Notes under the pieces: model-generated
Seen by the model: the letters and a program-made list of their open reading frames with translations, nothing else
Database searches by the model: none
What the model was told of the DNA's origin: nothing
Made by a program: the position numbers and the translations under genes
Shown here: positions 820 to 47,000 of the stretch, one piece after another
How positions within the stretch are numbered: position 1 is the first letter of the stretch
How the letters are laid out: each line of letters opens with the position of its first letter
Assembly: GCA_030704615.1 (NCBI GenBank)
Contig: CM060733.1
Location: forward strand, 29,698,001-29,762,000
Direction: 5' to 3'
Origin: Takakia lepidozioides
Taxonomy: Eukaryota > Plantae > Bryophyta
DNA: 64,000 nt

Positions 820-1337
820 CTGTGAGGTGGGGTGGGTATCTTCACGCAGAGTTTGCCAATGAATTCTTTGGATTGAAAGATAGCTCGTTCAAGGAATTTC
901 CCTTTTTCAAAGATGCCTGTATTATCATTGTGGTCAACTCTGGCTGCTCAGCTGCACAGCTGCACAGTGGTGGTTTTCACAGCAGAACTAAGACAATTTG
1001 GATTTCGAACGTAAGTGCACACAGGTGGCCTTATGGGTGGAGAATCAATCGAACTCGCCTTCGGTGAAAGCTGGGCTTGCTAGTATGGCACAAGGTCGAG
1101 AGCGTAGTGATGATTCTATGCTCAAAATGCAGCGGGGACCAAGATGGCCGAAAGAGGGCGTCGACTTCACGCCTACCAGCCATGGGCTTGTGAGGGCACT
1201 GTGTGCAGACTCCGATACTTTTGTCTGTCTCTTGCAAGAGTGCATCAAAGTGAAAGTCCTTGCAGAGGGGAAGCAGGTGCATGTCCGCAATTCCGTAGTT
1301 CAAGCCAGGCATTGTATTCAACACCCTTGTCAACATG
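820..1337 (+). pseudogene. 5' fragment of a PDF-motif + PLS-PPR gene (paralog of the 7932-10587 gene)
   Basis: Colinear with ~8030-8677 at DNA and protein level ([60 protein letters not shown]...[25 protein letters not shown]...FNTLVNM). It has an 8-nt duplication (gctgcaca x2), an in-frame TAA, internal deletions, and breaks off in the first S motif. Confidence 0.85.
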
Positions 1338-1462
1338 CAGGAGCAAGGCGGACGCCAAGATATGACTGTTTTGGAAGCCCCACCATTGAGCTATTCGTGC
1401 ATGTGTGTTTTCACCTCTTTTCCTTTCTTTTTAGGTTTCCACCTGCAGGTCTATAAAATAGG

Positions 1463-3116
1463 ATGCGGACCACTTTCTATGATGGGCTTGGTAAGTTGGC
1501 TAGTCTGGTCGATCTGACTGAGTGTTTTTGACATGTTACTGCTACTGGGGTTACAGGCAAATATCCAGAAAGCCAAGATATAGAGATGGTGAAGGTTTGG
1601 AATTACTATGCTGCAAGCCCCAGTCAATGGTGGGACACTCGAGGTAATAAGGTGAATGCCTGTCAGCTTTGAAGTAGACAATAAGATGCATCTCCCAAAT
1701 TGATGATACCACCCATGATCTCTCTCTCTCCTTTCTCCTCTCTGCTATTCTCCATAACCCACAGGGCAATATCATTCATGTGTCTCCTATCTGCTGCAAC
1801 AGAGAGGGACATTGGATCCAAATCACAGTTTGTATTATGAGAGTACTGCCAGCTGTTAATCAACACTTGATTCCTCTAAGTGAACAGCCACATTCACATG
1901 TAACACATTTGTTGGACAAATGGTGAATCACCTTCATGCTTTCTTAGCTGATGATGTATTCCATGCAACAGAATGCAGTATGAGGACAATGCCTGGTCAT
2001 TAATCAACACTCAATCCCCTGTGTCTGGAATATTGTCAGCTGTGGGTGGGGTCTGCCTTGAATATCCTTACTGGTTTGAACCCTTGAATGGCTCCAAGAG
2101 GGGTGAATGCTGGCAAAGAGATTCTCTCAATTCTCTTCCTCCCACTACTTTGTAACTCACTCAATTCCCTCTGCAATATTTGTGTCTGCTGTGGGAGAGT
2201 GCTATGTAAATTCTGGGCTGCCTCAAATATCCTACTGGTTTGATGATCAATGCTGGCAAAGAGAAAGTTTCTCGCTACACTCTCTTCCTCCCACAACTTT
2301 TTAACTTTTAAACTCAGAGTAGGAACTAGCGTCTGATATGTAGGGGAGGTGTTGGCTGTGTTGCTCATGTTTTGTCATTGTCAGCTTCTGATAGTAAAGA
2401 GGAGGGAGCTATGCATGTTTGTTGTGGAGGCAGGAACAGCTGATGGAGACAGGGATGGATCATGGGTGCAGGTCCATCCAAGGGGACCAAATTTCAAGCA
2501 CAAGAGTACCAATGAGGCTCTGTGGATTTATGGCTACAAGAAACCTCCTTTAGATGGTCGGTTGGAGAAGCTGGATACAGCTAGGGGTAAGTATCATGAA
2601 ATACGTCGATGAGATGGAAGGTTACAAGTGCGAGATTCTCCCACATCATCTCTCTCTTTTGCCATTATAAGTTACACACAAGCACCTTGGTAACAATGTC
2701 TCTTCCATAGGGTTTATCTGGTAATGCCTACGAAGATACTGGATACGACCTGGCATTTTTATAGTTCTAGGTTCAGCAGTTGGTGTTTTCCCTTTCAGCA
2801 GAGAGAGAGATGATGCCAACCGAAGTTCGTATAAATAAGAGCCTCTTCCCCTTGTGGGTACTGCCCTTTCTCTTTTGTGTCCGTATGTTTTCACCCTGTG
2901 TTTTCCTTTTAGGTTTCCACAGGGGCCGGCTGAGATAACATGTACACCGCTTTTGCATCATGGTCCATGGATCTTTGATCGATCTGAATGGTTGTGACAT
3001 GTTAATGCTTCTTCTTTGCAGGCAACAATCCTGAAAGCGAAAATGCAGACGTGGAGAGGCTTTGGGCCAACCATTTTCCAAATCCAAGTCAATGGTGGGA
3101 CAATGGCGACAATAAG
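1463..3116 (+). CDS. Predicted upstream exons (1463-1490, 1557-1651, 2472-2586, 3022-3116) encoding OSB-type PDF motifs, splicing in frame to the PPR-DYW exon at 3840
   Basis: All junctions are GT-AG and phase-compatible (1,0,1,0). Translation: ...VKVWNYYAASPSQWWDTRGNK|VHPRGPNFKHKSTNEALWIYGYKKPP...VERLWANHFPNPSQWWDNGDNK|VEINPRGSDFKH... matches the W-x-NP-x-WWDNR-x-K-x-NP-x-PDFKHK-x-EALW pattern. The joined ORF is 982 aa. The true start codon is uncertain. Confidence 0.65.
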
Positions 3117-3839
3117 GTGAATTTGTGTGAAGATACAGCAGAAGTAGACAACAATCTCTCTCTCTCTCTCTCTTTCTCTTTTTCTTTTTTCACCAACTTT
3201 CAAAATCTCAACGCTGAGCCTAAAACCCTGGCCCTTTTGGAGTGTAACTGCTGGCCAGACACACAGCAGAGTGATGCTTGTCTGAAGGGCTCTCTAGAGG
3301 AAGTCTGGAAAGCCCAAACAAATTGTTTATATCAAGGTAAGTACCACTACTGGAGTGAGCCCCTCACAAAGGTAGTGGCTGTTCCCATTTGTTCCACCCA
3401 AACTGGGCGCGGTCTATGGCCACAAGGCTACAGCGAACAACATCTCATCAGTACATTCTTTTTCTGTGCGTGGATGGGGCTGCCAGTTTGCACATGTTTC
3501 ACATCTGTTGCAAGCTAGAGGCTATTGGAGCAGTTCTGGATAGACCTTATACTTCCTAGAGCAAGGGTATTGTCAGCAGATTAATCTACACTCAATTCCT
3601 TACTCAGAGATTGTGTTGGCTGTGTGTGAGCACTATAGAATTTCTGAGCTGTATGAAAGCCCCTGTAATTGGATTGTTTTCTTCACAGTATGCAAGGCAT
3701 AAGAGAACTTGGGGTTTAGAGTTGGGGTTTCTGAAGTGTTATTTATGGGTTAAAATCGTCAGCTACTTGCAGCGAGGCAGATCTATTCATTTTGTTGTGG
3801 AGGCATGAATAGCTGAAGGAGGAACTGGATGGAGTGTAG

Positions 3840-6455
3840 GTGGAGATCAATCCCAGGGGATCAGATTTCAAGCACAACTGTGTCAACGAGACACTGTGCA
3901 TTTATAGCTACAAGAAATCTATGTGGGAAGACTGTCAACTGGTAGCAGCAGCAGCACCAGTGTATGAATCAGGCAGGACTGCCATGATGACTTCTTTTAA
4001 AAGAAATTCAAAAGGGGGATTCCACATGAACTCCTCTGGCACTTGTGGGAAGAGACTATGTATGGCAGGACAATTGAAAGAGGCTCTGCAAATTTTGGAC
4101 CAAGAAGGCAATTCAGCAGACTCCAATACCTATGTCTGTCTTTTGCAGGGGTGCATGAAGATGAAAGGCTTAGCAGAGGGAAAGCTGGTGCATGCCCACA
4201 TTATCCGAAGTGGATTCAAGACGAACCTCTTTCTTCAGAACACCCTCATGGACATGTACGCGAAGTGCGGGAGTGTGGTGGATGCACGCCGAGTGTTTGA
4301 CAAAATGCCTTTACGAGATGTCTTTACATGGACTATAATGATGACAGGATACGCCAAGCATGGGTATGGGAGGAAGGCCATCGAGTTATATGAGCAAATG
4401 AGACAGGAAGGGATCACGCCTGACAATGTGACATTCACATGCGCTCTCAAGGCATGTGCCAGCCTAGGAGCCCTGGAAAAGGGTGAAGAGGTGCATGCTG
4501 ACATAATCAAAACAGGAATTAAGCCACATGTCATTCTGGAGACTGCCCTGGTCAACATGTATGCCAAATGCGGGAATATGGAGGATGCACGACAAGTGTT
4601 CAATACCATGGCTCAGCGAGATGTGGTTGCATGGACGGCGATGATCACAGGATATGCTCAGCATGGGTGTGGCAGGGAGGCTTTGGAGACATATGAGCAG
4701 ATGATGCACAAAGGTGTGCCTCCCAACGAAGTCACCTTTGTCTCCGTTCTTAATGCGTGTGCCAGCCTGGGAACCCTGGAAAAGGGCATTGAGGTTCATG
4801 CTCTCATGATCAAAGCAAGGACTAAGCCAAATATCATTCTGGAGAATTCGCTTGTTGACATGTATGCAAAATGCGGGAACATAAAGGATTCACGTCAAGT
4901 GTTTGACAATATGGCTATTCGAGATTTGGTGTCATGGAATGCAATAATTGGAGGGTATGCTCAGCATGGGTGTGGCCAGGAGGCGTTGGAGACCTATAAG
5001 CAAATGTTACTGGAAGGGGTGACACCTGATAATGTCACATTCATTTGTGTTCTAAATGCGTGTGCCAGCCTGGCAGCCCTGCAAAAGGGCAGAGAGATCC
5101 ATGCTGGCATCATGAAAGCTGGAATTGGGGCAGATGTCATTCTGGAGACAGCACTTGTCGACATGTATGCCAAATGCGAGAACATGAAGGATGCAAATAA
5201 AGTGTTCCAAAGTATGGCTACACGAAATGTGGTTTCATGGAACGTGATGATCACAGGCTATGCCCAGCATGGATGTGGTAGGGAGGCTTTGGAAACCTAC
5301 GAACAAATGATACAGGAAGGAGTGATACCCGACGAAATCACCTTTGTTTGTGTTCTCAACGCTTGTGCCAGTCTGGCAGCCCTAGAAAAGGGTAAAGAGG
5401 TCCATGCTGACATGATTAAAGGCAGAATCAAGCCAAATATCATTGTAGAGAATACCCTTATAAACATGTATGCTAAATGTGGGGACGTACAGCATGCGCA
5501 TGAAATTTTGGAAAGTATGGCTAAGCGAGATGTGGTCTCATGGACTGCGATGATCGCAGGATATGCTCAGCATGGTTGCGGTATGGAGGCCCTGCAACTA
5601 TTTGAACAAATGAAACAAGAAGGATTGACACCGAATTGCATCACTTTTATAGGTCTTCTGTCTGCATGCAGCCATGTGGGACTGGTGGAAGAAGGTCGAT
5701 ATTACTTTGATTCCATGAGCCAAGATCATGGTCTATCTCCATCGGCAGAGCATTTTGGCTGCATGGTGGACCTTCTTGGCCGTGCCGGGCAACTGGATGA
5801 GGCAGAAGACTTGGTTCACAATATGCCATGCGAAGCAGATGTTGCGGTGTGGGGGGCCTTGCTTGGTGCCTGCAGAATTCATGGTAATGTGGAGGTGGCA
5901 GAACGTGCAGCAAAATTCCTTCTCAGGTGGGATCCACAGCACGCTGCCACATATGTGTTGCTATCCAACATCTATGCTGCGGCTGGCAGGTGGGATGACA
6001 CTGCAAAGGTGAGGAAAATGATGAAGGACAGAGGTGTCAGAAAGGAGCCAGGATGCAGCTGCATTGAAATCGACAACCGTGTGCATACATTTGTCGTAGA
6101 TGACAAGCTGCATCCACAAATTGATGAAATCCTTGCTGAGTTGGACAGGTTGTCTGGGCAGATGAAGAAGGACGGGTACATACCCGACACGCGCTTTGTA
6201 TTGCATGATGTGGAGGAGGATGAAAAGGAATTTTCTCTTTGCCAGCACAGTGAGAAGCTGGCGATTGCTTTTGGGCTCATCAGCACATCCCCTGGGACTC
6301 CTCTTCAAATCATCAAGAACCTTCGGGTATGTGGTGACTGCCACACAGCCACCAAGTTCATCTCAAAGATTGTTGGACGAGCAATTGTTGTACGGGATGC
6401 CAACCGCTTTCACCACTTCCAACATGGTGTGTGTTCTTGTGGGGATTACTGGTGA
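3840..6455 (+). CDS. PLS-class PPR protein with E1-E2-DYW:PG domain (organellar C-to-U RNA editing factor), main exon
   Basis: 17 PPR motifs (L1-S1-P1 triplets ending P2-L2-S2), E1/E2, PG box [22 protein letters not shown] and terminal CSCGDYW in an uninterrupted frame. The GTG 'start' is more likely a splice acceptor (tag|GTG). Confidence 0.97.
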   Translation: MEINPRGSDFKHNCVNETLCIYSYKKSMWEDCQLVAAAAPVYESGRTAMMTSFKRNSKGGFHMNSSGTCGKRLCMAGQLKEALQILDQEGNSADSNTYVCLLQGCMKMKGLAEGKLVHAHIIRSGFKTNLFLQNTLMDMYAKCGSVVDARRVFDKMPLRDVFTWTIMMTGYAKHGYGRKAIELYEQMRQEGITPDNVTFTCALKACASLGALEKGEEVHADIIKTGIKPHVILETALVNMYAKCGNMEDARQVFNTMAQRDVVAWTAMITGYAQHGCGREALETYEQMMHKGVPPNEVTFVSVLNACASLGTLEKGIEVHALMIKARTKPNIILENSLVDMYAKCGNIKDSRQVFDNMAIRDLVSWNAIIGGYAQHGCGQEALETYKQMLLEGVTPDNVTFICVLNACASLAALQKGREIHAGIMKAGIGADVILETALVDMYAKCENMKDANKVFQSMATRNVVSWNVMITGYAQHGCGREALETYEQMIQEGVIPDEITFVCVLNACASLAALEKGKEVHADMIKGRIKPNIIVENTLINMYAKCGDVQHAHEILESMAKRDVVSWTAMIAGYAQHGCGMEALQLFEQMKQEGLTPNCITFIGLLSACSHVGLVEEGRYYFDSMSQDHGLSPSAEHFGCMVDLLGRAGQLDEAEDLVHNMPCEADVAVWGALLGACRIHGNVEVAERAAKFLLRWDPQHAATYVLLSNIYAAAGRWDDTAKVRKMMKDRGVRKEPGCSCIEIDNRVHTFVVDDKLHPQIDEILAELDRLSGQMKKDGYIPDTRFVLHDVEEDEKEFSLCQHSEKLAIAFGLISTSPGTPLQIIKNLRVCGDCHTATKFISKIVGRAIVVRDANRFHHFQHGVCSCGDYW

Positions 6456-7601
6456 AAGGAGCAACATGCAAGAGTGAAAGTACGTCTCTTGAAACTTGAG
6501 GTCGGAAGGCCAATAAATTGCTCCATTTTAGTAAGCAATAGGTAAGCTGGAAGAAGGATGTTGTGCAATTGAATGTGACAGTCTGTACTGTATGTGGACA
6601 TGATCATGGTGACCTGCAGACACATGGCCAAGCTGGCCATGTTGTGCCAAACATGTGGTAGTGATGTTATCCATTCACGCGACCTTCATATTAGTCTCCT
6701 GTCTGGTATCTTTGAGGATGACTGCAGGTATAGTAGGTTGCACCGTATTTTGCACAACGACCATTGACTCCACAGGAAGAAATGGTAGGTCATTCACACA
6801 ACAATTGCGGGTTACCCTTGAAAAAGCCCAGGAGTTAAAAATCGCTGACAACCTGGTCAGGATGCTAAAACCAGGGTATAGCATTCGGTGAGAAGAATGA
6901 CATACACAAGCACTCTAGAGGAGCCAAAAACAGAGTTATATGCACGACCAGATGTGGATCATGGAGTCTGCAGACAGACTACTGTAGGCATTGTGGGCAG
7001 TTCTGCTGATAGAATTTGTTAAATGGGTTGTCATCATGAACCTGTATCAGTGAATATGTGCATCCACCTCTGTTCCCAAGTTATTCGCATGAGTCTATAT
7101 GTATTATGACCCTACAGCATCAAAAGCAACAAGACTGGCAGCTGAGGCACAAGTAGAATCTGCTCCTGTTTCTTCTGCCATTGTTTCATCTGCCATCAAA
7201 GTTTTCTGGCTACCCTGCCATGCCATCTATGTTTTGGGCTGCCTCCCCTCTACTTTACAGTCGTCACTTGGGCCCAAAGCATTTGTCTCAAGAACGGGAT
7301 TAGCTCTTGATAGAAATGCCGACTATGCAGTGCAGTTCAAGAACACTTCCTCTGCATCTAAAAGTTGGCAATCCAGTGAATCCAGTCAATGTACATGTCT
7401 CTATTCATTCACACCTTCCCACACAAATACTTGCCCATGGCAGTTGTTGTGCTTCGTGACCCACATTACATTCCAAACGATAGAGAGTAAGCATTGAAGA
7501 ACACCAGCAAAATGATAGGGATCAAGTTCTTTCTCATCGTTTTCTCTGCTGCTCTTTGAAAAAAGGATAAATATAACTCATCATCATATTCTTACGTACT
7601 C

Positions 7602-7673
7602 GCGTTTGTAGTCCAACGGTTAGGATAATTGCCTTCCAAGCAATAGACCCGGGTTCGACTCCCGGCAGACGCA
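7602..7673 (+). tRNA. tRNA-Gly (anticodon UCC), nuclear plant type
   Basis: GCGTTTG/CAGACGC acceptor stem, ATTGC-CT-TCC-AA-GCAAT anticodon arm, GGTTCGACTCC T-loop/B box, discriminator A. AT-rich 5' flank and a T5 run at ~7709 as a likely Pol III terminator. Confidence 0.97.
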
Positions 7674-7931
7674 TACACTGGACTTGTAACGTACTCGAAC
7701 TCCCTCTCTTTTTCTCTTTCTGCCTCATTCCTGGGAGTGAGAGACGTGCAAGTTCCCCGTTCAGTTTGCTGGTTTTGCAGCGCAGTGTTTCTGAGGACCC
7801 ACAAACTGTGGAGCTGCTTTGATGTCTGCGTGTGTTTGCATATGTGGAGAGTCTCGCACTCGTCCTGCCCCATCTTTTCGTTTTGTGATCTACACACACA
7901 TGTGGGTCTTGTTAAGCTTGCAGTTCTAGTT

Positions 7932-10587
7932 ATGAAGGTCGAAGTTGGGAGTTCCTTGGAGTTGGGAAGCAGGAGGAAACAGGAGTTTCTCGCAGAGCAT
8001 TCGCAGTTGGGGGACCGGAGGATTGTGGAGGTGAGGAGGGTACCTTCATGCAGAATAGGAGGGAGTTTGTCAATGAATGCTTTTGATGGAAGGGGGCGTA
8101 GCTACAATTTTCGTGGTTTTGGTATCAGTAATTTTTTCTTTCTTTTCGGCAGGAATGAGAGTTGCTTGTTCAAGGTATTTCGCTTGACTTGAAGATGCCT
8201 GGGTAATCTTTGTAGTAAGCTATGGCTGCTCAGCTGCACAGTGGTGGTATGCACAGAAGAATTTGAACTGTGTGGACTTCAAGTGGAAGCGTACGAAGGA
8301 GGCCATATGGATAGAGAATCAGTCGAACCCGCCTTCGGTGAAAGCAGAACTGACAGCTATGGCACAGGGTCGAGCCCAGTCTGGCGATGGTTCTATGCTC
8401 ATTTTACAGCATGGACCAAGATGGACAAAAGAGGGCGTCCATATCGCACCTACAAGCTGTGGGGATGTGAGGGCACTGAGTAAAGAGGGAAGACTGAAAG
8501 AGGCGCTTCACACTCTCGACCGACAAGGCGTTCAGGCAGACTCCAATACTTTTGTCTGTCTCCTGCAAGAGTGCATCAACATGAAAGCCCTTGCAGAGGG
8601 GAAGCAGGTGCATGCCCACATTTTACAAAGTAAGTTCAAGCCAGGCATCATTGTATTCAACACCCTCGTCAACATGTATGCCAAGTGCGGGAGCATGGTG
8701 GATGCACGGCAAGTGTTCGAGGAAATGACTCAAAGGGATATATTCACGTGGACTACGATGATGGCAGGATACGCTAAACATGGACAAGCTGAGGAAGCTT
8801 TCAAAATCTACGAGCAAATGGAAGGGGATGGTGTCATGCCCAACAGGGTCACATTCGTTTGCGCTCTCAATGCATGTGCCAGCCTTGGAGCTCTGGAGAT
8901 CGGCAAGAGGGTGCATGCTGACATCAATAAAGCTGGGATTGCGTCATACGTTGTTTTAGAGACAGCTCTCGTTGACATGTATGCCAAATGTGGGAGTGTA
9001 AGAGATGCCCGTCAAGTGTTTGACAAAATGACCAAGCGAGATGTGGTCGCATGGAATGCAATGATCGCAGGATACGCTCAGAATAGCCATGGTGCAGAAG
9101 CTCGTGGTGAAGAGGCCCTCCAAATCTATGCGGAAATGCAACAGGAAGGTGTGACTCCTGACAGGGTGACATTCATTTCCGTTCTCAATGCGTGTGCCAG
9201 CCTAGGAGCGCTGGAAAAGGTCCAGCAGATCCATGCTGATATCATGAGAGCTGGAATTGCTTCATATGTCAATTTGAATAATGCCCTTCTCCACACATAT
9301 GCAAAATGCGGGAGTGTAAAGGATGCATGTCAAGTGTTCGATAAAATGGCCAAGCGAGATGTGGTTTCATGGAATGCAATGATCACAGCATATGCTCAGA
9401 ATGGGCAAGATGAAGAGGCTCTGAAACTCTATGAGAGAATGCAGCGTGAAGGTGTGACACCCAACGAGGTCACATTTATTTGCGTTCTCAATGCGTGTGG
9501 CAGTATTGGAGCTCTGGAAAAAGGCAAGATGGTCCAGGCGGACGTCGTTAAAGCTGGAATAACGCCATATGTCAATTTGGAGAATGCCCTTGTCGACACA
9601 TTTGCCAAATGTGGGAGTGTTTTAGATGCGCATAAGATGTTTGAAAAAATGGTCAACAGAAATGTTGTCTCATGGAGTGCGATGATCACAGGATATGCTC
9701 AAAATGGGCATGGTAGGAAGGCCCTACAACTGTTTGAAGAAATGCACAAGGAAGGCGTGAAGCCGGTTGGCATCACCTTCATTTCTGTTCTGTCTGCATG
9801 CAGCCATGCAGGCCTAGTGGATGAAGGCCGTCACTACTTTGATTCTATGAGCCGAAATCATGGCCTCACACCTACAATGGAGCATTTTAGCTGCATAGTG
9901 GATCTTCTTGGCCGTGCAGGGCAATTGGACAAGGCAAAGAATTTCATTAAGAAAATGCCTATCCAACCAGAATCTTCGGTGTGGTTGGCCTTGCTTGGTG
10001 CGTGCCGACTCCATAGTGATGTGGAGGTAGCAGAACATGCAGCAAACTGTGTTCTCAAGCTGAATCCACAGCATGCTGGAACTTACGTGTTGCTATCAAA
10101 CATCTATGCTGCAGCTGGCAGGTGGGACGATAGGGCAAAGATGAGAAGATTGATGGAGAACAGAGGAGTCCAAAAGGAGCCAGGGTGCAGCCGCATCGAG
10201 GTCAACAATCAGGTGCATGCATTCCTTGTAGATGACAAAGTACATCCAAAACTAGAGCAGATTCATTCTGAGCTGAAGCGATTATTTGTGCAAATGGAGG
10301 AAGCCGGGTACGTCCCTGACACACGCTTTGTACTGCATGATGTGGAGGAGGAGCAAAAAGTATCCTCTCTTGGCTACCACAGTGAGAAGCTGGCCATAGC
10401 TTTTGGGCTCATCAGTACTCCCCCTAGGACCCCTATCCGTGTCATGAAGAACCTTCGGGTGTGTGGTGACTGCCACACTGCCATCAAGTTCATCTCAAAG
10501 ATTGGTGGGCGAACCATTGTTGTACGGGATGCCACCCGCTTTCACCACTTTCGAGATGGACTTTGCTCATGTGGGGACTATTGGTGA
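7932..10587 (+). CDS. PDF-motif + PLS-PPR-E1-E2-DYW:PG protein (14 PPR motifs), with a probable 1-nt frameshift at 8187 separating the N-terminal leader
   Basis: Open frame 8188-10587: EDAWVIF...[39 protein letters not shown], then PLS repeats, PGCSRIE, HSEKLA, VCGDCH, CSCGDYW. The first in-frame ATG is at 8359. Upstream ATGs at 7842/7932 join only if A8187 is removed, as in the paralog at ~890-915. Confidence 0.9.
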
Positions 10588-12527
10588 ATTGAGATTCAAT
10601 TCTTAAAGACCTACACAGGAAGCCCAAAGACAACAGCCAGGACAGCCTATGTGACCCAAAGAAATGGACTGAGATCAACACCCAAAGACAAAGTGACTCA
10701 TAAAGGTTAGTGGCCTAACTCTCATCTTCTAAACGGGATCATCTTCTTGAGAGAGCAAAGAGAGATGATCACACACACATTCAACTTAGCCCTAGCTCTT
10801 TGCTGCCGTATACCCATGCACAGTGGTGACAGAGCAGAAAGGGGAAGCAGCTGGAGGAGTGGGATGGGATGATAGCAGAAGGAGGGCCACTATGGAGACG
10901 GAAGGTGTTCTGTTGTTGGAGGGGAAACCAAGAAAGAAGAAAGGAATTTCATAATGCCCACAGAGAAAGAAGGACCCTAGATCGAGCTACAAAAAGATCT
11001 GTCAAAATTAAAGAGAAAAAACTTGCAAGTGGACTGATTCTTAAGGTCATCATGGGTCTTGCAGCTCCTTGTGCAGGAGTGTGCTATTGAAATCACTTCA
11101 CATCTGTTCCGCTCCCCTGGAGAGCGGCTTCTACTGTTGCTGCGGTTGGCCCATGACACACCATTGAGGTGAGCTTTCTCTCTCTCTCTCTCTCCCTGCC
11201 CTTTTTCTCACCAGTCAACCACAGTTGGCACACCTATTGCAATGTAGAGGGCTGACAAGCAGCACTGGACTCAACCGTATGCTCTCTACTATCATCTCAA
11301 GGGCAGCACATAAACAACAGTGAATTCTCTGCAGGCCTATTCTTGTTGACTGTATTAGTGCTATTGGCTTTCACGTTGAGCGTCATATAGTGCAACCAGC
11401 CTAAGACCAGCATCTTTGAAACCTAGGGAAAATTCCTTGAATGAGTTATGTTCAGTCGAAAGAATTCATTGGCGAACTCTTGCCGTGTTTACGTGAAGAC
11501 ACGCATCTCACCTTCACAATCCTCTGGTCCCCACTGTGAATTGTTCAGTGGATCAAAAGTCTTTACTCTTGCTCCTGCCAAGAACTCGCGAGTCAAAAGA
11601 AGTCCCAAAATCGACGTTCATAGTAAGAACTGAAAGCTTAACAAGGCCTGCATGTGCGTGCACATTACGAAGAGGAAAGGCGGGCCAGGACAAATGCAGG
11701 ATCCACGTGTGCAAGAACAAGCAGGCATGAAGAAAGTTCTGGATGCATGTGACTTTCAGTCAACAGATTGAACAAAGACTAGGTACATGAGGGTTACCGC
11801 ATTCGAGTTGATTACTTGCTCTCATCTAAAAGACCGCGCTGGGCCATTGCAAATATCAGCAACATCCGGAAGCTCCAATGCACTGATCTATCCCCAGGAA
11901 GAAAAAGCACCAACACTGTAGGATCTGGTTGGTCTCTCAATTTGAAATTCAACAATCACTACCTCGTAGAGAGAAAGTAGCAGTTCTGATATCTCCTAGG
12001 TTTACTACACCAGACAATGTGCATCTGCCAGAAGTCCAACCTTGGTCTACAGTTTGGTACACAATTCTGCCCCCTTGGACTTGGAATGATTGCATTGGTT
12101 GCGTCGTGAATGCATTGACAAGCACAGATGTGAGAACATGGAGAGGAGGATAGGAAACCCATTGTTTATATGTTGGGGTTCTTAGAAAACATGAGCTTTG
12201 AAGCTTTGTTGAAATTCGAAATCTCAGGTCAGTCACAACTTGTCTGCATGTTCTTACCTGTATATCAATGTCTGAAGAGGGTTTCCATGCTCAAGGTGAT
12301 GCTCAAAGCTACACAGCTAAGGCTTTTTACCCAGGGTGTTGTCCTTGATAAATGTTCACCATCAGTCCTAGACCCAGAGTAGTAGTGAGGTAGTGCTTCC
12401 CGGCACTCGCAGAGAAATTCGTATATGTGGGTTGTGACGATGATTGCTTGCATGACTCAAAAGGCTATTAGCCGACAACACGAAGGTTTTAGCAAGGTGT
12501 CCAAAAAGCCTCTCATTTTAAGATAAT

Positions 12528-18809: not shown

Positions 18810-21800
18810 ATGAGTGATGAAAGAGAAGCTAGACTCCAGAGATATTCAGCAAAAAGAGAAAGTTATCTGAAAGCTAATTATCCATATCTTTGGGAGAGAG
18901 GAATAGACATAGGGGAATCATCTGGACCTCTCACACCATTAAGATCAGAGAGTACATCACCCATACCGGAAGAACTAGAGTTGGATGCCACTCCTTCTTT
19001 TTCTTTGCAAGAAAGATTAAGGGAATTGGTACAGGAAGAAGATCAACCACGAGGTGAAAGATCTGAGGTACATCCCTGGATAAATGATTTGACATAAATC
19101 TTTGATAAGAGTTGGCATGGAACACCAAAAGCATGAACTCCAGTTTCTGAAACAGAAGATGAAGAAGGAGGAGAGGATGTGGAAGAGCCAACGGAGAGTT
19201 CAAACTCTCCAACACCATTGCAATTGAGTTACATGAGTGAAGAAGAAGAAACCCAAGGGCAGAACTTGGAAGATGAAAACAGGGAGAAGAAATTGGAAGA
19301 TGAAGAGTATGAAGAAGTAGACCCAACAGCTGAGGTTGAGACTACAACCAGGACATCCCAACCCGTTGGACTTGGATCAAGTGGAGCACTTGGATCACAG
19401 GCCAACGAAGGTGTCGGCTCAGGGGGATCAGGCGGGCAGCCTGGATCTGGCTCTGGGGGGCCAAGGAGTGTGGGAAGTAGTGCAACTGGAGCTGGGAATA
19501 CTGTGAATACAGTGGGGCCAGTAGCAGGGAGTGCTCAGGGGCCAGCACTTGGTGGAAGTTCCACCACATTTACCACAAGTCCTCAAGGACCAACACCAAC
19601 AAGGGGGCCATCACCTGTCAGTGGGCAGGGGGTAGGGCCACAGATGGCGTTACAACCAACACGGACAAAACCACCTTTTCCAATATATTCAGGAAAAGGG
19701 GATCCTGATGTACACATTAGTCAATTTGAGCACATGTGTATTGTGAACAATGAGAATGGCGATGATGCCAAGATGAGACTGTTTCCTTGTTCACTTATAA
19801 AGAAAGCAAGTGAATGGTATGCAAGATTCCCTGATAATCATTTCCTAACCTGGAATGGCTTGAATACAACATTCCGAAATAGGTTCAGGACAAGTAAAAC
19901 TGAGGATGAAGTGTATGGAAGTTTACAATAGTTAAAGCAAAAGAAGCATGAAACTGTTGAGGAGTATATGGAAAAGATGGAATTGATGATGAAAAAGTTG
20001 ATTGCTGTACCAGCACCAGGTTTACAGAAGACTTGGTTTGTGAGTGGACTAAGACCAGAGTTGCAAAAGAAAGTAGATATATTACCCCATAATACAGTGG
20101 AGGAGGCATTTGAAACAGCGAATAGAATTGAGCAATTGGGAATGCTCAAGAGAGAAAAAAAAGATGATGAGGACTCTGAGGATGAGTCAGATGAGGAAAA
20201 GAGCAAGAGCTTAAGAGGAAGAGTAAGAGGAAGGAAAAGTTGAAGAGGGATAACTATGAGAAAAGATTAGAAGAAATCTTGAAGAAGTATGCCACAGAGG
20301 CTGCAACACATTGGAGGAAGGGTGTTTGGTGTACAAAATGCCAGAATGAAGGCCATACCACCACTGAATGCCACATGAAGGAGAAACACTGTACTATCTG
20401 TAAAATGGATAACCATTCTACTGAGAATTGTTATTACAACAGAAGGACAGCTGCAAGAGAACCTAGGCAAGTAAGGGTGCATCAAGTGCAACCCCAGCCA
20501 AGAAGAAACAGTGATCAGGACCACTATGGTAGGCCTAGTGGTTATAACAATGGCATGGAAGGGAGAGGTAATCCAAGAAGGAATTACTAAGGAAATTCCA
20601 GAGGCAACTATCAGGGTAATCCAAGGGGGAATTACCAGCCAGGGAATCAGGATTACAGAAACAATCCCAAAACAGACCAAGGGCGAGGACCTAATGGGGA
20701 AGAACTGTGTTACTATTGTAATCAGGCAGGACATCGCAAGGCAGCCTGTCCATTCTGGATCAGACACCAGAATGAGATGAGAGCTCATGTGAATGAGGGG
20801 CCAGTGGTGGCAGCTCACATGGTTAGGCCATGTGTTGTACCAGAAGTAAGTACAATGATAGTAACCAGAAGCAAAGCTAAATTAATACCTCCAGTAGATG
20901 AGGAAAGTGATGATAATGAAGATGGCAGTGATGTGCCTGAAGATGATGAGGCTTGGAGAGATGAGAAGGAACTGCACAAGGAAGTGGCAGATACCATAAG
21001 GGAAATGCAGAAGAGTACTGATATTCCTATGGCAGATTCCTCTGATTCTGAAAGAGAAGAGGAAGTGAGTGAGGATGAAGGGAAGAAAGAAGCTGCAGAA
21101 ATGCAGAGTAATGAAGGGACTTTGGCTGAAGTAATATGCCAGTCCAAAGCGGAGATTACCATTGGACAGCTATTGGCTGTGGCACCTTATTGTAGGCACA
21201 GGCTGTATCAAGCAATCAATCAGATTGCCCATGTGACAAGGAACACAGACCTGAACAGCAAGGTGACCAGTTATAATGTGAAGTCGGAAGGGCGAGAAAC
21301 AGTCATGGACTTTGATGATTCTATGCCAGTAATCCAATTGAGAATTGGAAGCACAGAACTAACTGATGTACTGATAGATGGAGGCTCTGGAGTGAATATC
21401 ATGACAGACCAATTAAAGCAAAAGCTTGGTCTAAGTAACATGAAACCAGCCCCATTTACAGTAACAATGGCAGATCAAAGAAGTGTTCAGCCATTGGGAT
21501 TGATAAGAGGAGTTAAGATACAGATTCAAAAGATGATCTTTAAGATCACAGTAACTGTGTTGAAAATGGATGAAGTTATGGAAGCTTACTCCTTATTGCT
21601 GGGTCGACCGTGGCTGAAACAGGCCAGGGTATTCCATGACTGGAATTCCCAGTTACTAACTGTGCATGATGGGATACACAAGATACAAATCACCACTAAG
21701 AAAAATCTAGTAGACTACCTGCTACGAGAAGACCTCGAGGGGTCAGGGAGTATGACTGGAGGGGAGGACTTGATGAGGAGCAGGAAGCTACCCTGTTTGC

Positions 21801-24800
21801 TGCACACCCAGAGTGGGAGCAGGTTACAGAGATGCAACTGGAAGGCCTAAGTTGTTTAAAAGGTATCTGCTGTGGTGTAGTGACAGCAACACCAATTGAG
21901 GGTGAAACAAACAGTTACCCACCACATTTCTATGAAGAAAGAGAGGGAGAAATGGAAATCCTAGAGGAATAAGCCATTGTGAGTTTACAGGATGAAGTGA
22001 TGACTGGTTGGACAATCAGAGCTGATGAGCAGGTGAGAGAAGTGAATGTGGGAACTGAAGAGGAACCGAGGATGGTGAAGGTAGGGGCTGATTTGGAGCC
22101 TGAATTCTTTGAGGAAGCTAAGAGTCTGTTCATCAAATACAGAGATGTATTTGCTTGGAGCTACGAGGATCTGAAAGGGATACCACCTGAGATCTGTCAG
22201 CATAAGATTGAACTGGAACCAGGATCAGTACCAATCAAACATGCAAGGTACAAAATGAATCCCAACTATGCACAGAAGGTTGGGGAAGAGATCAAGAAGT
22301 TGGCTGAGGCTAAGTTTATATACCCGATAGAGTATACAATTTGGTTGTCACCCATTGTGATAGTTCCCAAGAAGAATGGTAAACTGAGAGTTTGTGTGAA
22401 CTATAAGAAGTTGAATGCTTGTACGAAGAAATATTCTTTCCCTTTGCCATTCACAGAAGCGGTATTGGACACTGTGGCAGGCCATGAGATGTACTCATTC
22501 ATGGATGGCTTCAGTGGTTATAATCAAGTGCAAGTGGCAGAAGAAGACCAGGGAAAAACAGCTGACATCACAGACTAGGGTGCTTATGCATACAAAGTCA
22601 TGTCTTTTGGACTTTGTAATGCAGCAACAACTTTCCAGAGAGTGATAAGTGAATATTTTCATGAGTATCTGGATGATTTCATGCAGGTGTTCTTGGATTA
22701 TTTCATTGTGTACAGTTCTAAGAATGAGCACTTGCATAAATTGGAGTTATGTTTGGCCAGATGCAGGATGAGAGGTCTGGGCCTGAATCCAGAGAAGTGT
22801 ACTTTCTGTGTGAACTCAAGGGTGCTTTTGGGACACATTGTGTGTAAGAGGGGACTTCTTGTGGATCCCAGAAAGACAGAGGCCATTAAAGCCTCTCCAC
22901 CACCAGTAAATGTTAAGAGTCTAAGGAGATTCCTTGGACAAACAAGTTATTACAGAAGATTTGTCAGACGGTATGCACAGATAGCAGCACCATTGAGCAA
23001 GCTTCTGAATAAAGATGCAATGTTTGCATGGACAGCTGAATGTCACTAGGCTTTTGAGGAACTTACATTGTCAGTAACAACTATACCTGTGCTGATTGAC
23101 CCTCACTGACATGTAGTATTTCATGTTCACTGTGATGCCTCAGGAGAAGCGTTGGGAGCAGTGTTAGCCCAAAATGTTACAGGAAACATAGATTCACCTG
23201 TGTACGATTCTAGCAAGTTGATGAACAGTGCTGAAAGGAACTATAGCACAACTGAAAGAGAAGCACTGGCAATGATTTATGCAGTCAAGAAATTCAGACA
23301 TTACCTATTGGGAAAGAAGTTTATGTTTTATGTGGATCATCAGGCTCTGATTTATTTGGTGAACAAGCCTTTGATAAGTGGAAGGATAGCAAGGTGGTTA
23401 ATAATCTTACATGAGTTTGAGTTCGAAGTTGTTTACAAGCCTGGCCGTTTGCATCTTGTGGCAGATCACTTGTCACGCCTATCAACAGGAGAGCCCGCTA
23501 CAGGAGTAGACGACCAACTACCTGATGCGAGTTTGTTTGCAGTGGAGGTGCAGGGAAGTGCTAACCAGTGGCCAATCAGATACTACCTTACTCATGGTCA
23601 GTGCCCACCTAGTTATGGAAATGAGCAGAAGAAGAGAATCGCTATCAAGGCTTTAGCTTATACTATGGTAGGGGGCAGAATATATAAGCTAGGATCTGAT
23701 GGAGTACTTAAACGATGCTTGTACCACCATGAAGTAAATAAAGTTTTGGAGGAAGTTCATAAATGAGTGGCTGGAGGTCATTTTGGAGAAGAGACTACTA
23801 GTAGAAAGATACTACTTGCAGGTTACTGGTGGCCTACTTTGTTCAAGGATGTACACAAGTATTGTAAGAGTTGTGATGAGTGTCAGAGGCTAGGACCATT
23901 GCAGAGATCTGGGAAGATGGCTTTGCATCCTACGATGTCTCCTAAACCATTTCAGAAATGGGGACTAGACTTTGTTGGACCAATTAACCCACCAGCCAAG
24001 AATACACAGAACAAGTATATAATCACAGCCAATGATTATACTACAAAGTGGGTGGAAGCTAAAGCTTTGAGGGACAACACAGCTAAGTCCACATCAAGGT
24101 TCCTGTATGAGAACATACTTACAAGATTTGGCTGTCCCCTGGAATTTATCAGTGACCAGGGAAGTCACTTCATTAATGAGACCATAGAACTATTGACTAA
24201 AAAGTTCATGATTGTGCATAGGAACAGTACAACTTATTACCCACAGGATAATGGGCAGGCAGAGGCTACCAACAAAATACTATGTACTATCTTGGCTAAG
24301 ATAGTCAATGCAAACAGAACAGATTGGGATACAAAGCTGTTGACGGCTTTGTGGTCATATAGGACTTTATATAAAGTCACCACTAAGTATATACCATTCC
24401 AATTAGTTTATGGTATGGAAGCTTTACTTCTAGTGGAGTTCTTGTTACCTACCATGAGAACGGAATGGGGAAGGAGAATGGAATTGGAAGATTCAATTAA
24501 GGTCATCATGTGGAAGAAGTACGTGCTGATGCAGCAGATAGCATGACCAGAATTCAGATTAAGAGGAAGGATCAATTTGATGAAGGTAAACTGAAAACTT
24601 TTAAGACGGGTGATTTGGTTCTGTGGTTGCAGAAGAAGGGGAAGATTAAGGCTTCTAAGCTTAAATCACCATGGAAAGGACCTTATATCATACAGAAGAT
24701 GTATGATAACAACACCGCCATGTTACAAACCATTAACAAAGAGATGTTGGGAAGAGTCAATGCCAATAAGTTGAAAGGATACAGTGGTATCCACGACAAA

Positions 24801-44041: not shown

Positions 44042-47000
44042 TTATTGGTGGACACAGGAGCGTCGCACTCCTTCAGGACACCGGCAACGGCACGGAAGTT
44101 GGGACTCCCGACAAGTGATGTGGGGGCTTCTATTGAGGTGCGTTCTAAAAGAGAACCACAATTGGCGACGAGGTTGGCGTTCGATGTTCCTCTTCAGCTC
44201 GGGAGCTGGGAGGGACGTGAGAACTTCACCATTTGCGAGATCGATGGAGTGGATCTCATTTTGGGGATGACCTTTTTGAGCAAATTAGGAGCGGTCATAG
44301 ATGGCCGCAAGAGAATAGTCACGCTACCGTGTGGGAATGGTGGCGAAGTTTTAAGAGTGTCGGAAACGTCAACCCAGTGGGAGGGCAAATAAACCTGTTG
44401 TCAGCGAAAAAGTGGGCCGTGGAGGAGCCACACGAGCCCCAGTTTTTGCTCTACGTAAGACAAGTGAAGGGAGAAGGCGATGGGGATCCGAACCCAGATT
44501 GGATCAAGGGGATTTTGGAGAAATATCAAGATATGATGCCGGAGGATTTACCAAGCGGCTGGCCACCGCGAAAAGGAGTTGACCACAAGATTGAGGTGAT
44601 ACCGGGATCGGAGCCGCCTGCCAAGGCGCTCTACCGGTTGAGCCACAGAGAGTTGGTCGAGCTGAAGACTCAGCTCAAGGATCTAATGTCAAAAGGGTAC
44701 ATCTGGCCGAGTAAGTCACCTTACGGAGCCCTGGTGCTATTCGCGGATAAAAAGGACGGGACGCTGCGGATGTGTGTCGATTATAGGGCTCTGAATAAGG
44801 TGACTATAAAAAACCGATACCATTTGCCAAGGATCGACGACCTCTTCGATCGGTTGGCAGGAGCGAAGTATTTCAACCGGATCGATTTGCGCTCCGGGTA
44901 TCATCAAATTCGAGTGGCGGAAGGAGATGAGGAAAAGACCGCGTGTAGGACAAGGTATGGTTTATATGAGTTCTTGGTGATGCCTTTTGGGCTCACCAAC
45001 ATACCCGTAACCTTTAGCACGCTAATGAACAGCCTTTTCCAGGAGTGGTTGGACGACTTTGTGATCGTGTACATCGACGACATCTTGGTGTACTCGAAAA
45101 CAAATGAAGAGCACCTGGAGCAGCTCAAAAGGGTGTTCCAGAAATTACGGGAAGGGAAGCTGTATGCCAAAGCTTCAAAGTGCGAATTCGGGGTCACAAA
45201 AGTGGAGTTCTTGGGGCATGTGATGACACAAGATGGGATCAAAATGGATGACAGAAAGGTGAGAGCAATCTTGGACTGGGAGCCTCCGACTTCGGTCCCA
45301 GAAGTGCGATCCTTCTTAGGACTCGCCTCCTATTACCGAAAGTATGTGAGAAATTTCGCCAAGATCGCGGGGCCGCTGTCAGACCTCCTGTGTAAATCCA
45401 AAGTCTGGGTATGGAACACCTTTTGTGGCCAAGCTTTTGCCGAGTTGAAGCAGCGGATGACAGAAGCTCCAGTCCTGAAAATCCCGGAGTTCAACCGCCC
45501 ATTTGAGATTCATACGGATGCGTCGGACTTCGCGATTGGAGGTGTACTCATGCAGGATGGACGTCCAGTGGCTTACGAAAGTAAGAAACTGAATGAAGTG
45601 GAGTGGCGGTGGCCAACGCACGAGAAAGAGATGAAGGCGGAAAACATTGCCTTAAGCTTTGGCGCCACTATGTTGGTTCCAACCCGGTAAAGGTGTTCAC
45701 GGACAATGTCACGGTGAAGTATTTTGCCACGCAGCCTAAGTTGTCCCCAAAACAACTTAGGTGGCAAGACACTTTGGCAGTGTTCGACGTGAATATCCAG
45801 TACAAACCGGGATGGGACAATGTGGTGGCCGATGCTTTAAGTAGAAAGCAGCAGCTCATGTTAGTGTACAAGGGCGAGACGGTGCTTCAGAGGAAGATCC
45901 GGAAGACTTACCGGAAGGATGAGATGACGAAGTCCGTGATGCGGGACTTGAGGATGGGGGTTAAATCGCAGTTCCACTTGCAAAATGGACTACTACGGTA
46001 CAAACAAAAGTGTCTCTACGTGCCGAAGGAAGGGATCAAAGATAGTCTCTTGAGAGAATGTCATGATGGCCCGCTTGCGGGCCACGGCGGAGCCAAGCGC
46101 ACCGCAACACTCTTGAAAAAAGAGTATTTCTGGCCCAAACTAAGGGAGGAGGCCGAAGAGTATGTCAAGACGTGCACCACATGCCAACAAAACCGGAGCG
46201 AGTACAAAAAGCAAGCGGGGCTGTTACAACCTTTGCCGATTCCAGATGGGTCTTGGGAAAGTGTCTCGATGGACTTCATGACTGCTATGCCGCTGTCAAA
46301 AGGATTCGATGCAATCATGGTGGTGGTGGATAGGTTCAGTAAAATGGGCCATTTCATCCCTACCAAGGAGCCTGCAACGGCACAAGAGACGGGGCGACTT
46401 TACTTCGCCCACGTCTTCAAGCATCATGGACTCCCGAAGGATATTGTCTCGGACCGCGATCCAAAGTTTACTAGTAAATTTTGGAGGGTACTTTGGAAGA
46501 AAATGGGGACGAGGCTCAAAATGAGCACCGCCTTCCGACCTACGACGGACGGCCAAACGGAAAGGGTGAATTCCGTGGTGAAGCAGATCTTGCGGAATTA
46601 CGTGTCAGCGGATCAATCGGACTGGGTGGAGTACTTAGATGCGGCAGAATTCTGTTATAATAACACAAAACACTCCGCAACGGGAGTTTCCTCTTTCGTA
46701 TTGGTCTATGGAAAAGCACATCTGGTGCCGACAAGTTGGGCCGCCTAAGACGTTGAGGAACCGGCAGCAGTGCTAGAAGAATGCGAACGTTTGTTAAAGC
46801 TCGCAAAGTACAACATTGCCAAAGCTAGGAAACGGTATGAACGGCAGGCGAATCGGAAGCGGAGGGAGGTCAAGTTTGAGGCAGACACGGAGGTCTGGTT
46901 GAACATCAAGAATTTTCGACTACCTCCGGAAGTGAGTCCGAAGTTCGTACCTCCGTATGCGGGACCCTTTCGCATCCGGAAGGTTATGAATGAGGATGTG

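Follow-up and report, generated by a model that had tools for sequence, protein, structure and literature searches.

Two PPR-DYW genes with PDF motifs lie on the forward strand of the window (the whole 64,000-nucleotide stretch of Takakia lepidozioides DNA analyzed here); a third is not supported. Gene 1 comprises four exons, A to D, with GT..AG borders and a reading frame that is continuous through the joins. Exon A (positions 1557 to 1651, phase 1 to 0, first in-frame ATG at 1586, 22.2 bits) encodes the N-terminal half of PDF1, and exon B (2472 to 2586, phase 0 to 1, 30.8 bits, with a record in run X2) encodes its C-terminal half, a P-N-F variant. PDF2 is divided between exon C (3022 to 3116, phase 1 to 0, 21.4 bits), where a conserved Arg is replaced by Gly, and exon D (3840 to 6455, 16.0 bits), where the motif reads S-D-F and a conserved Trp is replaced by Cys. 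Exon D continues through a linker into five PLS triplets, E and E+ motifs, and a DYW:PG deaminase with HSE and CxxC; the DYW domain (PF14432) spans 6174 to 6452 (Pfam E value, 8.6e-45). In a probable RNA contig, positions 1402 and 3838 are separated by exactly 303 letters, which fit exons A, B, and C; the RNA nature of runs X1 and X2 is conjectural, and the contig's three middle pieces were matched by length. The frame-consistent exons and the fitting contig bear out the initial annotation of gene 1 as two intron-split PDFs fused in frame to a PLS-E-DYW:PG protein.

The gene 1 transcript begins with a 5' exon at 725 to 1402 (donor GT after 1402), represented by contigs 725 to 916 and 896 to 1402 in run X1. 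The initial annotation, whose quoted peptides were all found at their positions, had treated 820 to 1402 as a pseudogene with a decayed PDF and as one of three PPR paralogs with PDF-like motifs. The contig makes this segment a 5' exon of gene 1, which rules out three intact paralogs, and a working PDF in each of three paralogs is not supported; moreover, only a broken first PPR repeat is found there, so that it does not represent a third PPR-DYW paralog. Besides this repeat, the exon contains a broken PDF and a linker, in a frame different from that of exon A. It shares 69% DNA identity with 8152 to 8676 in the gene 2 region and is, judging by sequence, a copy, now decayed, of the 5' part of a gene-2-like gene. 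The decayed PDF (941 to 1066, 19.6 bits on the OSB-derived profile) carries a frameshift caused by an 8-nt duplication near 955 and a TAA stop at 989 to 991, within which the run X1 allele has A990C. The following intron (1403 to 1556) uses a cryptic donor inside an ancestral intron homologous to intron 2587 to 3021. By frame arithmetic, an upstream ORF at 1085 to 1583 (1085 to 1402 spliced to 1557 to 1583) ends 2 nt ahead of the main ATG. In this transcript, the only one observed for gene 1, upstream ATGs are numerous and an in-frame transit peptide is absent; other isoforms or downstream starts may exist, and gene 1 has apparently exchanged its original leader for a piece of a decayed paralog.

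Gene 2 is open throughout from its first in-frame ATG (8359 to 10587) and comprises a linker, four PLS triplets, E, and DYW:PG. The single intronless PDF attributed to this gene is present at 8200 to 8352 as a degenerate V-D-F motif with a fused-type signature (26.9 bits; 35 bits on a fused-type profile), but it lies behind an in-frame TGA directly upstream (8185 to 8187, within the exon expected to begin at acceptor 8153) and ahead of the first ATG, so that its translation is only putative. The same stop cuts off the leader from the PDF. This putative old leader exon (7822 to 8030) ends at an AG/GTGAG donor and has stops in the frame that it shares with an inverted, decayed copy on the reverse strand (11402 to 11731), which was recognized by sequence comparison, covers the gene 2 leader exon and the start of the PDF exon, and is the fourth leader copy in the window. 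No codon-position bias was seen between the leader and the inverted copy, and the coding status of the leader is therefore unproven. The gene 2 linker matches Diphasiastrum members of the PDF-PPR group.

The bodies of both genes are, by their domain content, ordinary PLS-E-DYW:PG C-to-U RNA-editing factors. Pfam PPR, PF20431, and PF14432 score above cutoff in both; S-motif anchors are spaced 101 aa apart (five in gene 1 and four in gene 2), as in a P-L-S array; the E motifs, PG box, DYW domain, HxE, and CxxC are intact; and the position-5 residues of the PPRs, read from crude anchors, are the T/N/S usual in RNA recognition. PLS-class editors are usually drawn as a transit peptide followed by repeats and E/DYW. 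The moss PLS-E-DYW:PG editors PPR56 and PPR65 have in common with the PDF-PPR proteins the 101-aa PLS spacing, E/E+, PG box, HSE, CxxC, DYW end, and intronless body, whereas the PDF-PPR proteins add one to three PDF modules between the leader and the repeats.

Match of the PDF motifs to OSB proteins

The PDF pieces were scored against a profile trained on 78 PDFs of SSB-domain (OSB-type) proteins, those of gene 1 exon by exon. Exons A, B, C, and the 5' part of D scored 22, 31, 21, and 16 bits, with 27 bits for the gene 2 PDF and 20 for the decayed copy, and these six pieces were the top six among 2,524 six-frame segments of the window. A chance motif is ruled out by 2,000 shuffles of each piece, the best of which reached 5 to 13 bits, below all six real pieces. 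Exons A and C are independent tests because they were absent from the query that gathered the training set. A profile of the C-terminal half recovered 54 SSB+PDF proteins and 9 PDF+PPR proteins, and a reciprocal search reached OSBs with E values down to 1e-17. The proposed OSB-type identity is thus upheld by the profile scores, the reciprocal search, and a fold match to an SSB cluster. The OSB-invariant columns (W, W-W-D, R, K, P-D-F-K-H-K, L-W, and P-x-W) are kept at 83 to 99% in fused relatives, the range being 85 to 99% for the W, D, R, K, P-D-F-K-H-K, and L-W columns. Residue losses in the window are D to N in PDF1; R to G, P to S, K to N, and W to C in PDF2; and several in gene 2.

A Pfam scan returned no family for any PDF piece; because no Pfam model hits it, the module has been invisible on ∼70 genes of one clubmoss and in mosses, liverworts, and ferns. 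A word-indexed homolog search with the window's own degenerate motifs yielded no matches, which reflects motif degeneracy and length limits rather than an absence of homologs. PF00436 (OB-fold/SSB) was not detected in the scanned ORFs of genes 1 and 2, and these genes are therefore not OSB proteins. The assignment of the PDF exons to a separate neighboring OSB gene was rejected, given this result and the contig that joins them to exon D. OSB1-4/pTAC9 and the PDF-PPR proteins have in common a ∼50-aa PDF, its conserved residues and predicted fold (Atlas TM 0.82), and tandem copy variation, and the phase-0 intron of PDF-PPR genes recurs at the corresponding position in PDF-repeat genes. The former combine an OB-fold (SSB) with C-terminal PDFs, whereas the latter lack the OB-fold and carry the PDF N-terminal to the PPR array.

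The PDF-PPR family in seed-free plants

It is virtually certain that the PDF-PPR family is real and fused. PDFs were found in 77 PPR proteins, including 73 Diphasiastrum clusters as well as Sphagnum and Calypogeia proteins, and the architecture is also present in the fern Adiantum. Intact members include the Calypogeia gene of CBCUJL010000068.1 and Diphasiastrum O6H91_10G000700. The suggested family across seed-free plants hence holds for mosses, liverworts, clubmosses, and ferns, with the PDF under purifying selection, and the named fusions found all come from seed-free plants. Sampled members (n = 84) have one to three PDFs each (median, 70 bits); HxE-CxxC is present in 19, and 65 are without a DYW domain. 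The distance from the PDF to the first repeat is 10 aa in moss and liverwort and about 57 aa in clubmoss, and the leaders of the relatives are basic and acid-poor. Intron positions match and intron phases are identical in Sphagnum, Calypogeia, and Diphasiastrum (phase 1 before the PDF and phase 0 inside it), and the phase-0 intron also occurs in two PDF-repeat loci. Moss, liverwort, and Diphasiastrum PDFs form one clade (starred; support, 97/88); a single clade for all fused PDFs was not rejected by the test applied (p-AU = 0.18).

In agreement with the initial annotation, which knew of no characterized example, a literature search (without Zaegel et al. 2006) found no description of a PDF-PPR fusion. 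The extra domains catalogued in moss PPR proteins are RRM, LAGLIDADG, SMR, NYN, CBS, and SAP, with no mention of PDF/OSB (PMC9459714); a survey of PPR fusions over 364 genomes does not mention PDF or OSB (PMC13386178), and a survey published in 2026, which covers 182 OSB genes, does not mention a PPR fusion (PMC13393729). PPR-RRM (PPR4/ORRM types), MORF-P, and RanBP2-PPR proteins likewise carry an accessory nucleic acid- or partner-binding domain in cis with PPRs. These are mostly rare or P-type, whereas the PDF is joined to PLS-E/DYW editors, occupies ∼70 loci in one clubmoss, and has DNA as its known ligand.

In predicted structures, the PDF forms a compact unit that is connected to the PPR array through a hinge. 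The AlphaFold model of a Diphasiastrum fused PDF is compact (pLDDT 95), and the model of PDF plus PPR (pTM 0.70) dips to pLDDT 62 in the linker. In the Atlas, the PDF model matches three PPR/DYW clusters (TM 0.85 to 0.88) and the SSB cluster (TM 0.82), both sides of the comparison being predicted. Searches of the PDB with Foldseek and VIA-align were negative (best E, 2.5; best Z, 3.1), a result that by itself does not establish a new fold, and an ESM Atlas feature search returned only weak phage hits (<0.8). The mean net charge of fused PDFs is about +0.5 to +1.

Within the family, the PDF is very probably functional. In Diphasiastrum, its dN/dS is 0.08 to 0.41 (all Fisher p < 0.03), compared with 0.88 for leader and linker, and 15.5 of 130 nonsynonymous sites differ between moss and liverwort, the synonymous sites being saturated. 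This purifying selection contradicts a family-wide vestige. The gene 1 PDF pair, however, looks neutral in sequence comparison: dN/dS between PDF1 and PDF2 is 0.84, pN = pS is not rejected (p = 0.82) over only 55 codons, and the value differs from the 0.25 of E-DYW (p = 0.003). The earlier caution that the window copies may be vestigial fits this ratio, the lost conserved residues, and the broken leaders, and it is doubtful that the gene 1 PDF still works. At this locus, the module would be on its way out, with gene 1 retaining two in-frame, relaxed PDFs, gene 2 a PDF cut off by a stop, and both PPR-DYW bodies constrained.

Proposed origin and role of the PDF module

An intronless PPR-DYW copy may have become linked to the exons that encode the PDF in an OSB-like gene, with the two-exon PDF module later duplicated in tandem. 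The best overall explanation, whose chances we regard as even, is an old land-plant family of PDF-PPR C-to-U editors (PLS class, E or E-DYW:PG) in which the PDF is an accessory single-stranded nucleic acid tether. The PPR array would select the site in the transcript, leaving deamination of C in RNA to the DYW domain, and the separately folded, hinged PDF would be a sequence-nonspecific binder of single-stranded nucleic acid. Published work assigns ssDNA binding to the PDF (PMC6963530, PMC13393729), which mediates it in AtOSB1 (PMC6963530); OSB1/2 prefer ssDNA over RNA (PMC4166229), and OSB1 limits R-loops and acts in recombination (PMC8330923). The PDF ligand would most likely be ssDNA, as in OSB1/OSB2, and the module would keep the editor at the organelle nucleoid, close to nascent transcripts; we hold this ssDNA/nucleoid role tentatively, at slightly less than an even chance, and the conserved fold could instead serve RNA or protein contacts. 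Its position N-terminal to the array, toward the 5' end of the RNA being bound, means that the PDF cannot present the target C. Characterized moss editors act alone in E. coli (PMC6397227), and the tether is therefore not required for catalysis. A bolder reading, possible but less probable, is that of a large, ancestral class of seed-free editors with their own ssDNA-binding module, coupled to the nucleoid, transcription bubble, or R-loop, which MORF-like trans helpers apparently replaced in seed plants; editing would then be cotranscriptional or linked to genome surveillance.

If the PDF had switched to RNA, it would be a built-in editing helper that binds the transcript nonspecifically 5' of the PPR site and raises affinity or unfolds structure, like ORRM, MORF, and OZ1 in trans in seed plants. 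Such a role would suit a hinged module that lies 10 or about 57 aa from the first repeat, where the 5' end of the RNA binds; furthermore, the named fusions found are all from seed-free plants, MORFs are confined to seed plants, and PPR fusions to RRM, MORF, and RanBP2 domains have been reported (PMC13386178). We nevertheless consider it rather unlikely, given the preference of OSB1/2 for ssDNA (PMC4166229) and the OSB residues that are unchanged in fused PDFs, where nothing points to a switch in specificity. That the PDF is kept for protein interaction or solubility, acting in OSB/nucleoid docking, self-association, or PLS folding, is improbable: its published function is ssDNA binding (PMC6963530, PMC13393729), and the model (pTM 0.70) does not show the PDF capping the PPR array, even though it is compact, Trp-rich, independently folded, and of low net charge, varies from one to three tandem copies, and belongs to a family in which most sampled members (65 of 84) lack DYW and so need partners.

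The PDF might also be a passenger, left when a PPR retrocopy inserted into an OSB gene and gained a promoter and transit peptide along with roleless exons. Retroposition drives PPR expansion in early land plants (PMC13386178), the intronless PPR body starts within the exon of the PDF C-terminal half, and the window PDFs look neutral or disconnected while the bodies are constrained, so that the PDF is dispensable in some copies. This would account for the origin and the local state but not for family-wide retention; the low dN/dS of Diphasiastrum PDFs relative to their flanks and the moss-liverwort conservation largely refute it for the family, and we give it a slim chance. The least credible proposal, which we regard as very unlikely, is that the PDF brings the deaminase onto organelle ssDNA, for DNA editing or recombination surveillance at PPR-specified sequences. 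An ssDNA-binding-type module and an intact cytidine deaminase do occur in one chain, and OSB1 acts on R-loops and in recombination (PMC8330923). Conversely, the position-5 residues (crude anchors) are those of RNA recognition, the DYW domain is of the ordinary PG type, most sampled members are without the deaminase, a PPR-DYW structure contacts RNA ribose and phosphate (PMC13324415), and the literature search turned up no work on DNA as a substrate of DYW editors.

PDF-PPR proteins permit a direct test of two questions: whether editing in organelles is coupled to the nucleoid and to nascent RNA, and how seed-free plants sustain heavy editing without MORFs. The editing assays available in moss and E. 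coli offer a clean comparison of editors with and without the PDF, which, if it boosts editing, would be a 55-aa component for the engineering of PPR editors. The intact members Calypogeia P0240 and Diphasiastrum P0208/P0210 are better test subjects than the window copies.

PDF motifs and exon layout of the Takakia genes

Two complete PPR-DYW bodies lie in the window, at 3840-6455 (gene 1) and 8188-10587 (gene 2, its downstream neighbor), both terminating in DYW and carrying PLS triplets, an E motif, the PG box, and the HSE and CxxC motifs. A profile of three C-half pieces of the motifs preceding them, searched against 1.84 billion proteins, gave 130 matches, including 54 with an SSB-like domain (called by an iterated local profile seeded with three Pfam PF00436 matches) and 9 with PPR arrays. 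On a second profile, built from 78 PDFs of SSB-bearing proteins, gene 1 exons A, B, and C and the 5' part of exon D scored 22, 31, 21, and 16 bits, the gene 2 motif 27 bits, and the decayed copy in the supposed pseudogene (820-1402) 20 bits. Shuffled pieces (2000 each) reached maxima of only 5 to 13 bits, and when all six frames of the window were scanned these six places scored highest, bearing out the initial annotation, which had placed OSB-type PDF motifs before the PPR arrays. Exons A and C were absent from the query and are therefore independent tests of the match.

Exons A (1557-1651), B (2472-2586), and C (3022-3116), all on the forward strand, have GT..AG borders and phases 1>0, 0>1, and 1>0, so that A, B, C, and D join in frame; the model was searched one exon at a time. 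A+B (PDF1) and C+D(5') (PDF2) represent a tandem duplication of a single two-exon module, adjoining intron DNA included, and a phase-0 intron occupies the matching position in PDF exons of two unrelated plant loci. The frame from ATG 1586 comprises, by arithmetic, 963 codons. In gene 2, a TGA (8185-8187) lies upstream of the PDF and the earliest in-frame ATG is at 8359; splicing to a candidate acceptor, 8216 or 8242, might avoid this stop. The bodies are open and constrained over 3984-6455 and 8359-10587, yet neither has an evident in-frame transit peptide. Targeting may come from downstream starts (ATG 3984, ATG 8359) or unseen isoforms; the ∼25 residues after the putative start at 3984 in gene 1 are basic and acid-poor.

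Transcript-like contigs and the 5' exon of gene 1

Two sequencing runs of the same organism, X1 and X2, contain the stretch; the data are contigs only, and their RNA status is a guess. Contig depth is about zero across unique intron bins of these presumed RNA runs. An X1 contig of 1192 nt spans 896-1402 and 3838-4216 with 303 letters in between, which by arithmetic equal A+B+C minus two letters shared with the acceptor, the middle pieces not being displayed as an alignment; an X2 contig includes exon B and continues beyond. From the X1 contig, the supposed pseudogene is therefore the 5' exon of gene 1, and three tandem PPR paralogues are reduced to two complete bodies. This exon duplicates a gene-2-like 5' end in decayed form (69% identity, with an 8-nt duplication, a stop, and deletions) and is spliced from a cryptic donor within an old intron. 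Its frame differs from that of exon A, upstream ATGs are numerous, and a uORF stops 2 nt before ATG 1586. As observed in the X1 contig, gene 1 has two PDFs in frame without a transit peptide; we infer that two tandem paralogues were fused through a deletion to give the present gene. In paralogue contigs, A and B are joined with the expected spacing of 23 letters, and a form with a single PDF also occurs; together with the high depth on PDF exons, these contigs point to many PDF-bearing paralogues in X1 and X2.

Several minor features were observed. In the decayed PDF, TAA at 989-991 of the window is TCA in X1, with the 8-nt frameshift persisting, and X1 also carries a 3-nt insertion at 1100. 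The segments 14-515 (before gene 1) and 3200-3600 (inside the intron at 3117-3839) are repeat-like, and contigs of other loci give them high depth. Genes 1 and 2 have between them a forward-strand tRNA-Gly(TCC) gene (7602-7673), which lies about 150 nt ahead of the putative old leader exon of gene 2, and an inverted, reverse-strand decayed copy of that leader exon and the start of the PDF exon, with no PPR body behind it, is found at 11402-11731. Ty3/gypsy-like retrotransposon remnants (gag, protease, RT, RNase H, and integrase pieces, recognized by eye) occupy 19179-24546 and 44233-46748.

A PDF-PPR family in seed-free plants

The matches combining PDF and PPR came from the clubmoss Diphasiastrum complanatum, several species of the moss Sphagnum, the fern Adiantum capillus-veneris, and further assemblies. 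With one Diphasiastrum PDF as query, 77 proteins were found, every one with PPR domains. Most belong to Diphasiastrum (73 clusters, representing about 70 loci); three are of the Sphagnum type, and the remaining protein, with a full DYW, belongs to the liverwort Calypogeia fissa. Family proteins carry one to three PDFs (median, 70 bits), with a gap of 10 or about 57 residues to the first repeat; deaminase ligands are present in 19 of 84, and leaders are mostly basic and acid-poor. The linker of gene 2 resembles those of Diphasiastrum members; the Takakia genes thus have that junction too. Moss, liverwort, and clubmoss genes, like gene 1, have a phase-1 intron ahead of the PDF and a phase-0 intron inside each. 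An independent structure search of the Atlas (protein structure clusters) recovered three PPR/DYW clusters (TM, 0.85 to 0.88; 57 to 127 members) and an SSB cluster (0.82). The fused PDFs of moss, liverwort, and Diphasiastrum form one supported clade; a single origin of all fused PDFs is possible (not rejected; p-AU, 0.18). Among Diphasiastrum proteins, P0173 has a second PDF within its PPR region (residues 680 to 733), possibly two merged genes. The proteins P0009, P0030, P0047, and P0128 carry several PDFs each and matched neither SSB nor PPR.

The PDF module is very probably functional in the family, because dN/dS is low, nonsynonymous change is small, and OSB-invariant residues are retained (at 83 to 99% in fused PDFs of relatives). 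Ten pairwise comparisons of Diphasiastrum PDFs, non-independent and several with high dS, gave dN/dS of 0.08 to 0.41 (P < 0.03 in every pair); in one pair, the leader and linker gave 0.88, the PPR part 0.38, and the E-DYW part 0.34. Between the Sphagnum and Calypogeia PDFs, synonymous sites are saturated and 15.5 of the 130 nonsynonymous sites have changed. The dN/dS analysis suggested in the initial annotation thus indicates purifying selection in Diphasiastrum, whereas gene 1 PDF1 and PDF2 (0.84 over 55 codons) are indistinguishable from neutral and differ from the E-DYW parts of genes 1 and 2 (0.25; P = 0.003). Invariant residues have been lost, mostly in PDF2 and gene 2. Judged from sequence, the PDF copies in the window are relaxed, in keeping with the earlier caveat that they may be vestigial.

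The fusion is real, widespread, and testable, the window locus being a partly decayed example. No description of it was found in the literature searched, which included few subscription papers, and the main texts of a moss PPR domain review (PMC9459714), a study of editing-factor fusions across 364 genomes (PMC13386178), and a survey of OSBs from 2026 (PMC13393729) make no mention of it.

Possible roles of the PDF

AlphaFold predicts the PDF confidently as helix, small sheet, and helix (pLDDT, 95); no solved-structure match for the model was found. In a model of the liverwort PDF and first repeats, both parts are confident, and the dip at the linker (pLDDT, 62) and the pTM of 0.70 are consistent with a hinge. 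PPR arrays bind RNA with the N terminus toward its 5' side, so the PDF would lie far from the edited C.

The favored reading, a tentative one by analogy with OSBs, is that the PDF serves as a sequence-independent tether to nucleoid ssDNA, which would concentrate an otherwise normal RNA editor where transcripts are being made. In OSBs, the PDF is the part that binds ssDNA, and OSB1 and OSB2 prefer ssDNA over dsDNA and RNA (PMC4166229, PMC6963530, PMC13393729); OSB1 also restrains R-loops (PMC8330923). The leading rival, a less probable one, makes the PDF an RNA-binding editing helper in cis: MORFs are restricted to seed plants (PMC13386178), and the PDF-PPR fusions named here are throughout from seed-free plants. 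That the PDF is a protein-contact module seems unlikely, that it is a passenger more unlikely still, and DNA deamination is the most improbable reading.

A predicted structure model (mbe487382e32b) searched against the Atlas showed a PDF-like shape in two Uroviricota (phage) hypothetical clusters (TM, 0.63 to 0.65) and a weak likeness to a bacterial Rad52/22-family cluster (0.42) (rows 5, 6, and 8). These model-based likenesses offer a lead to a possible phage origin of the module.
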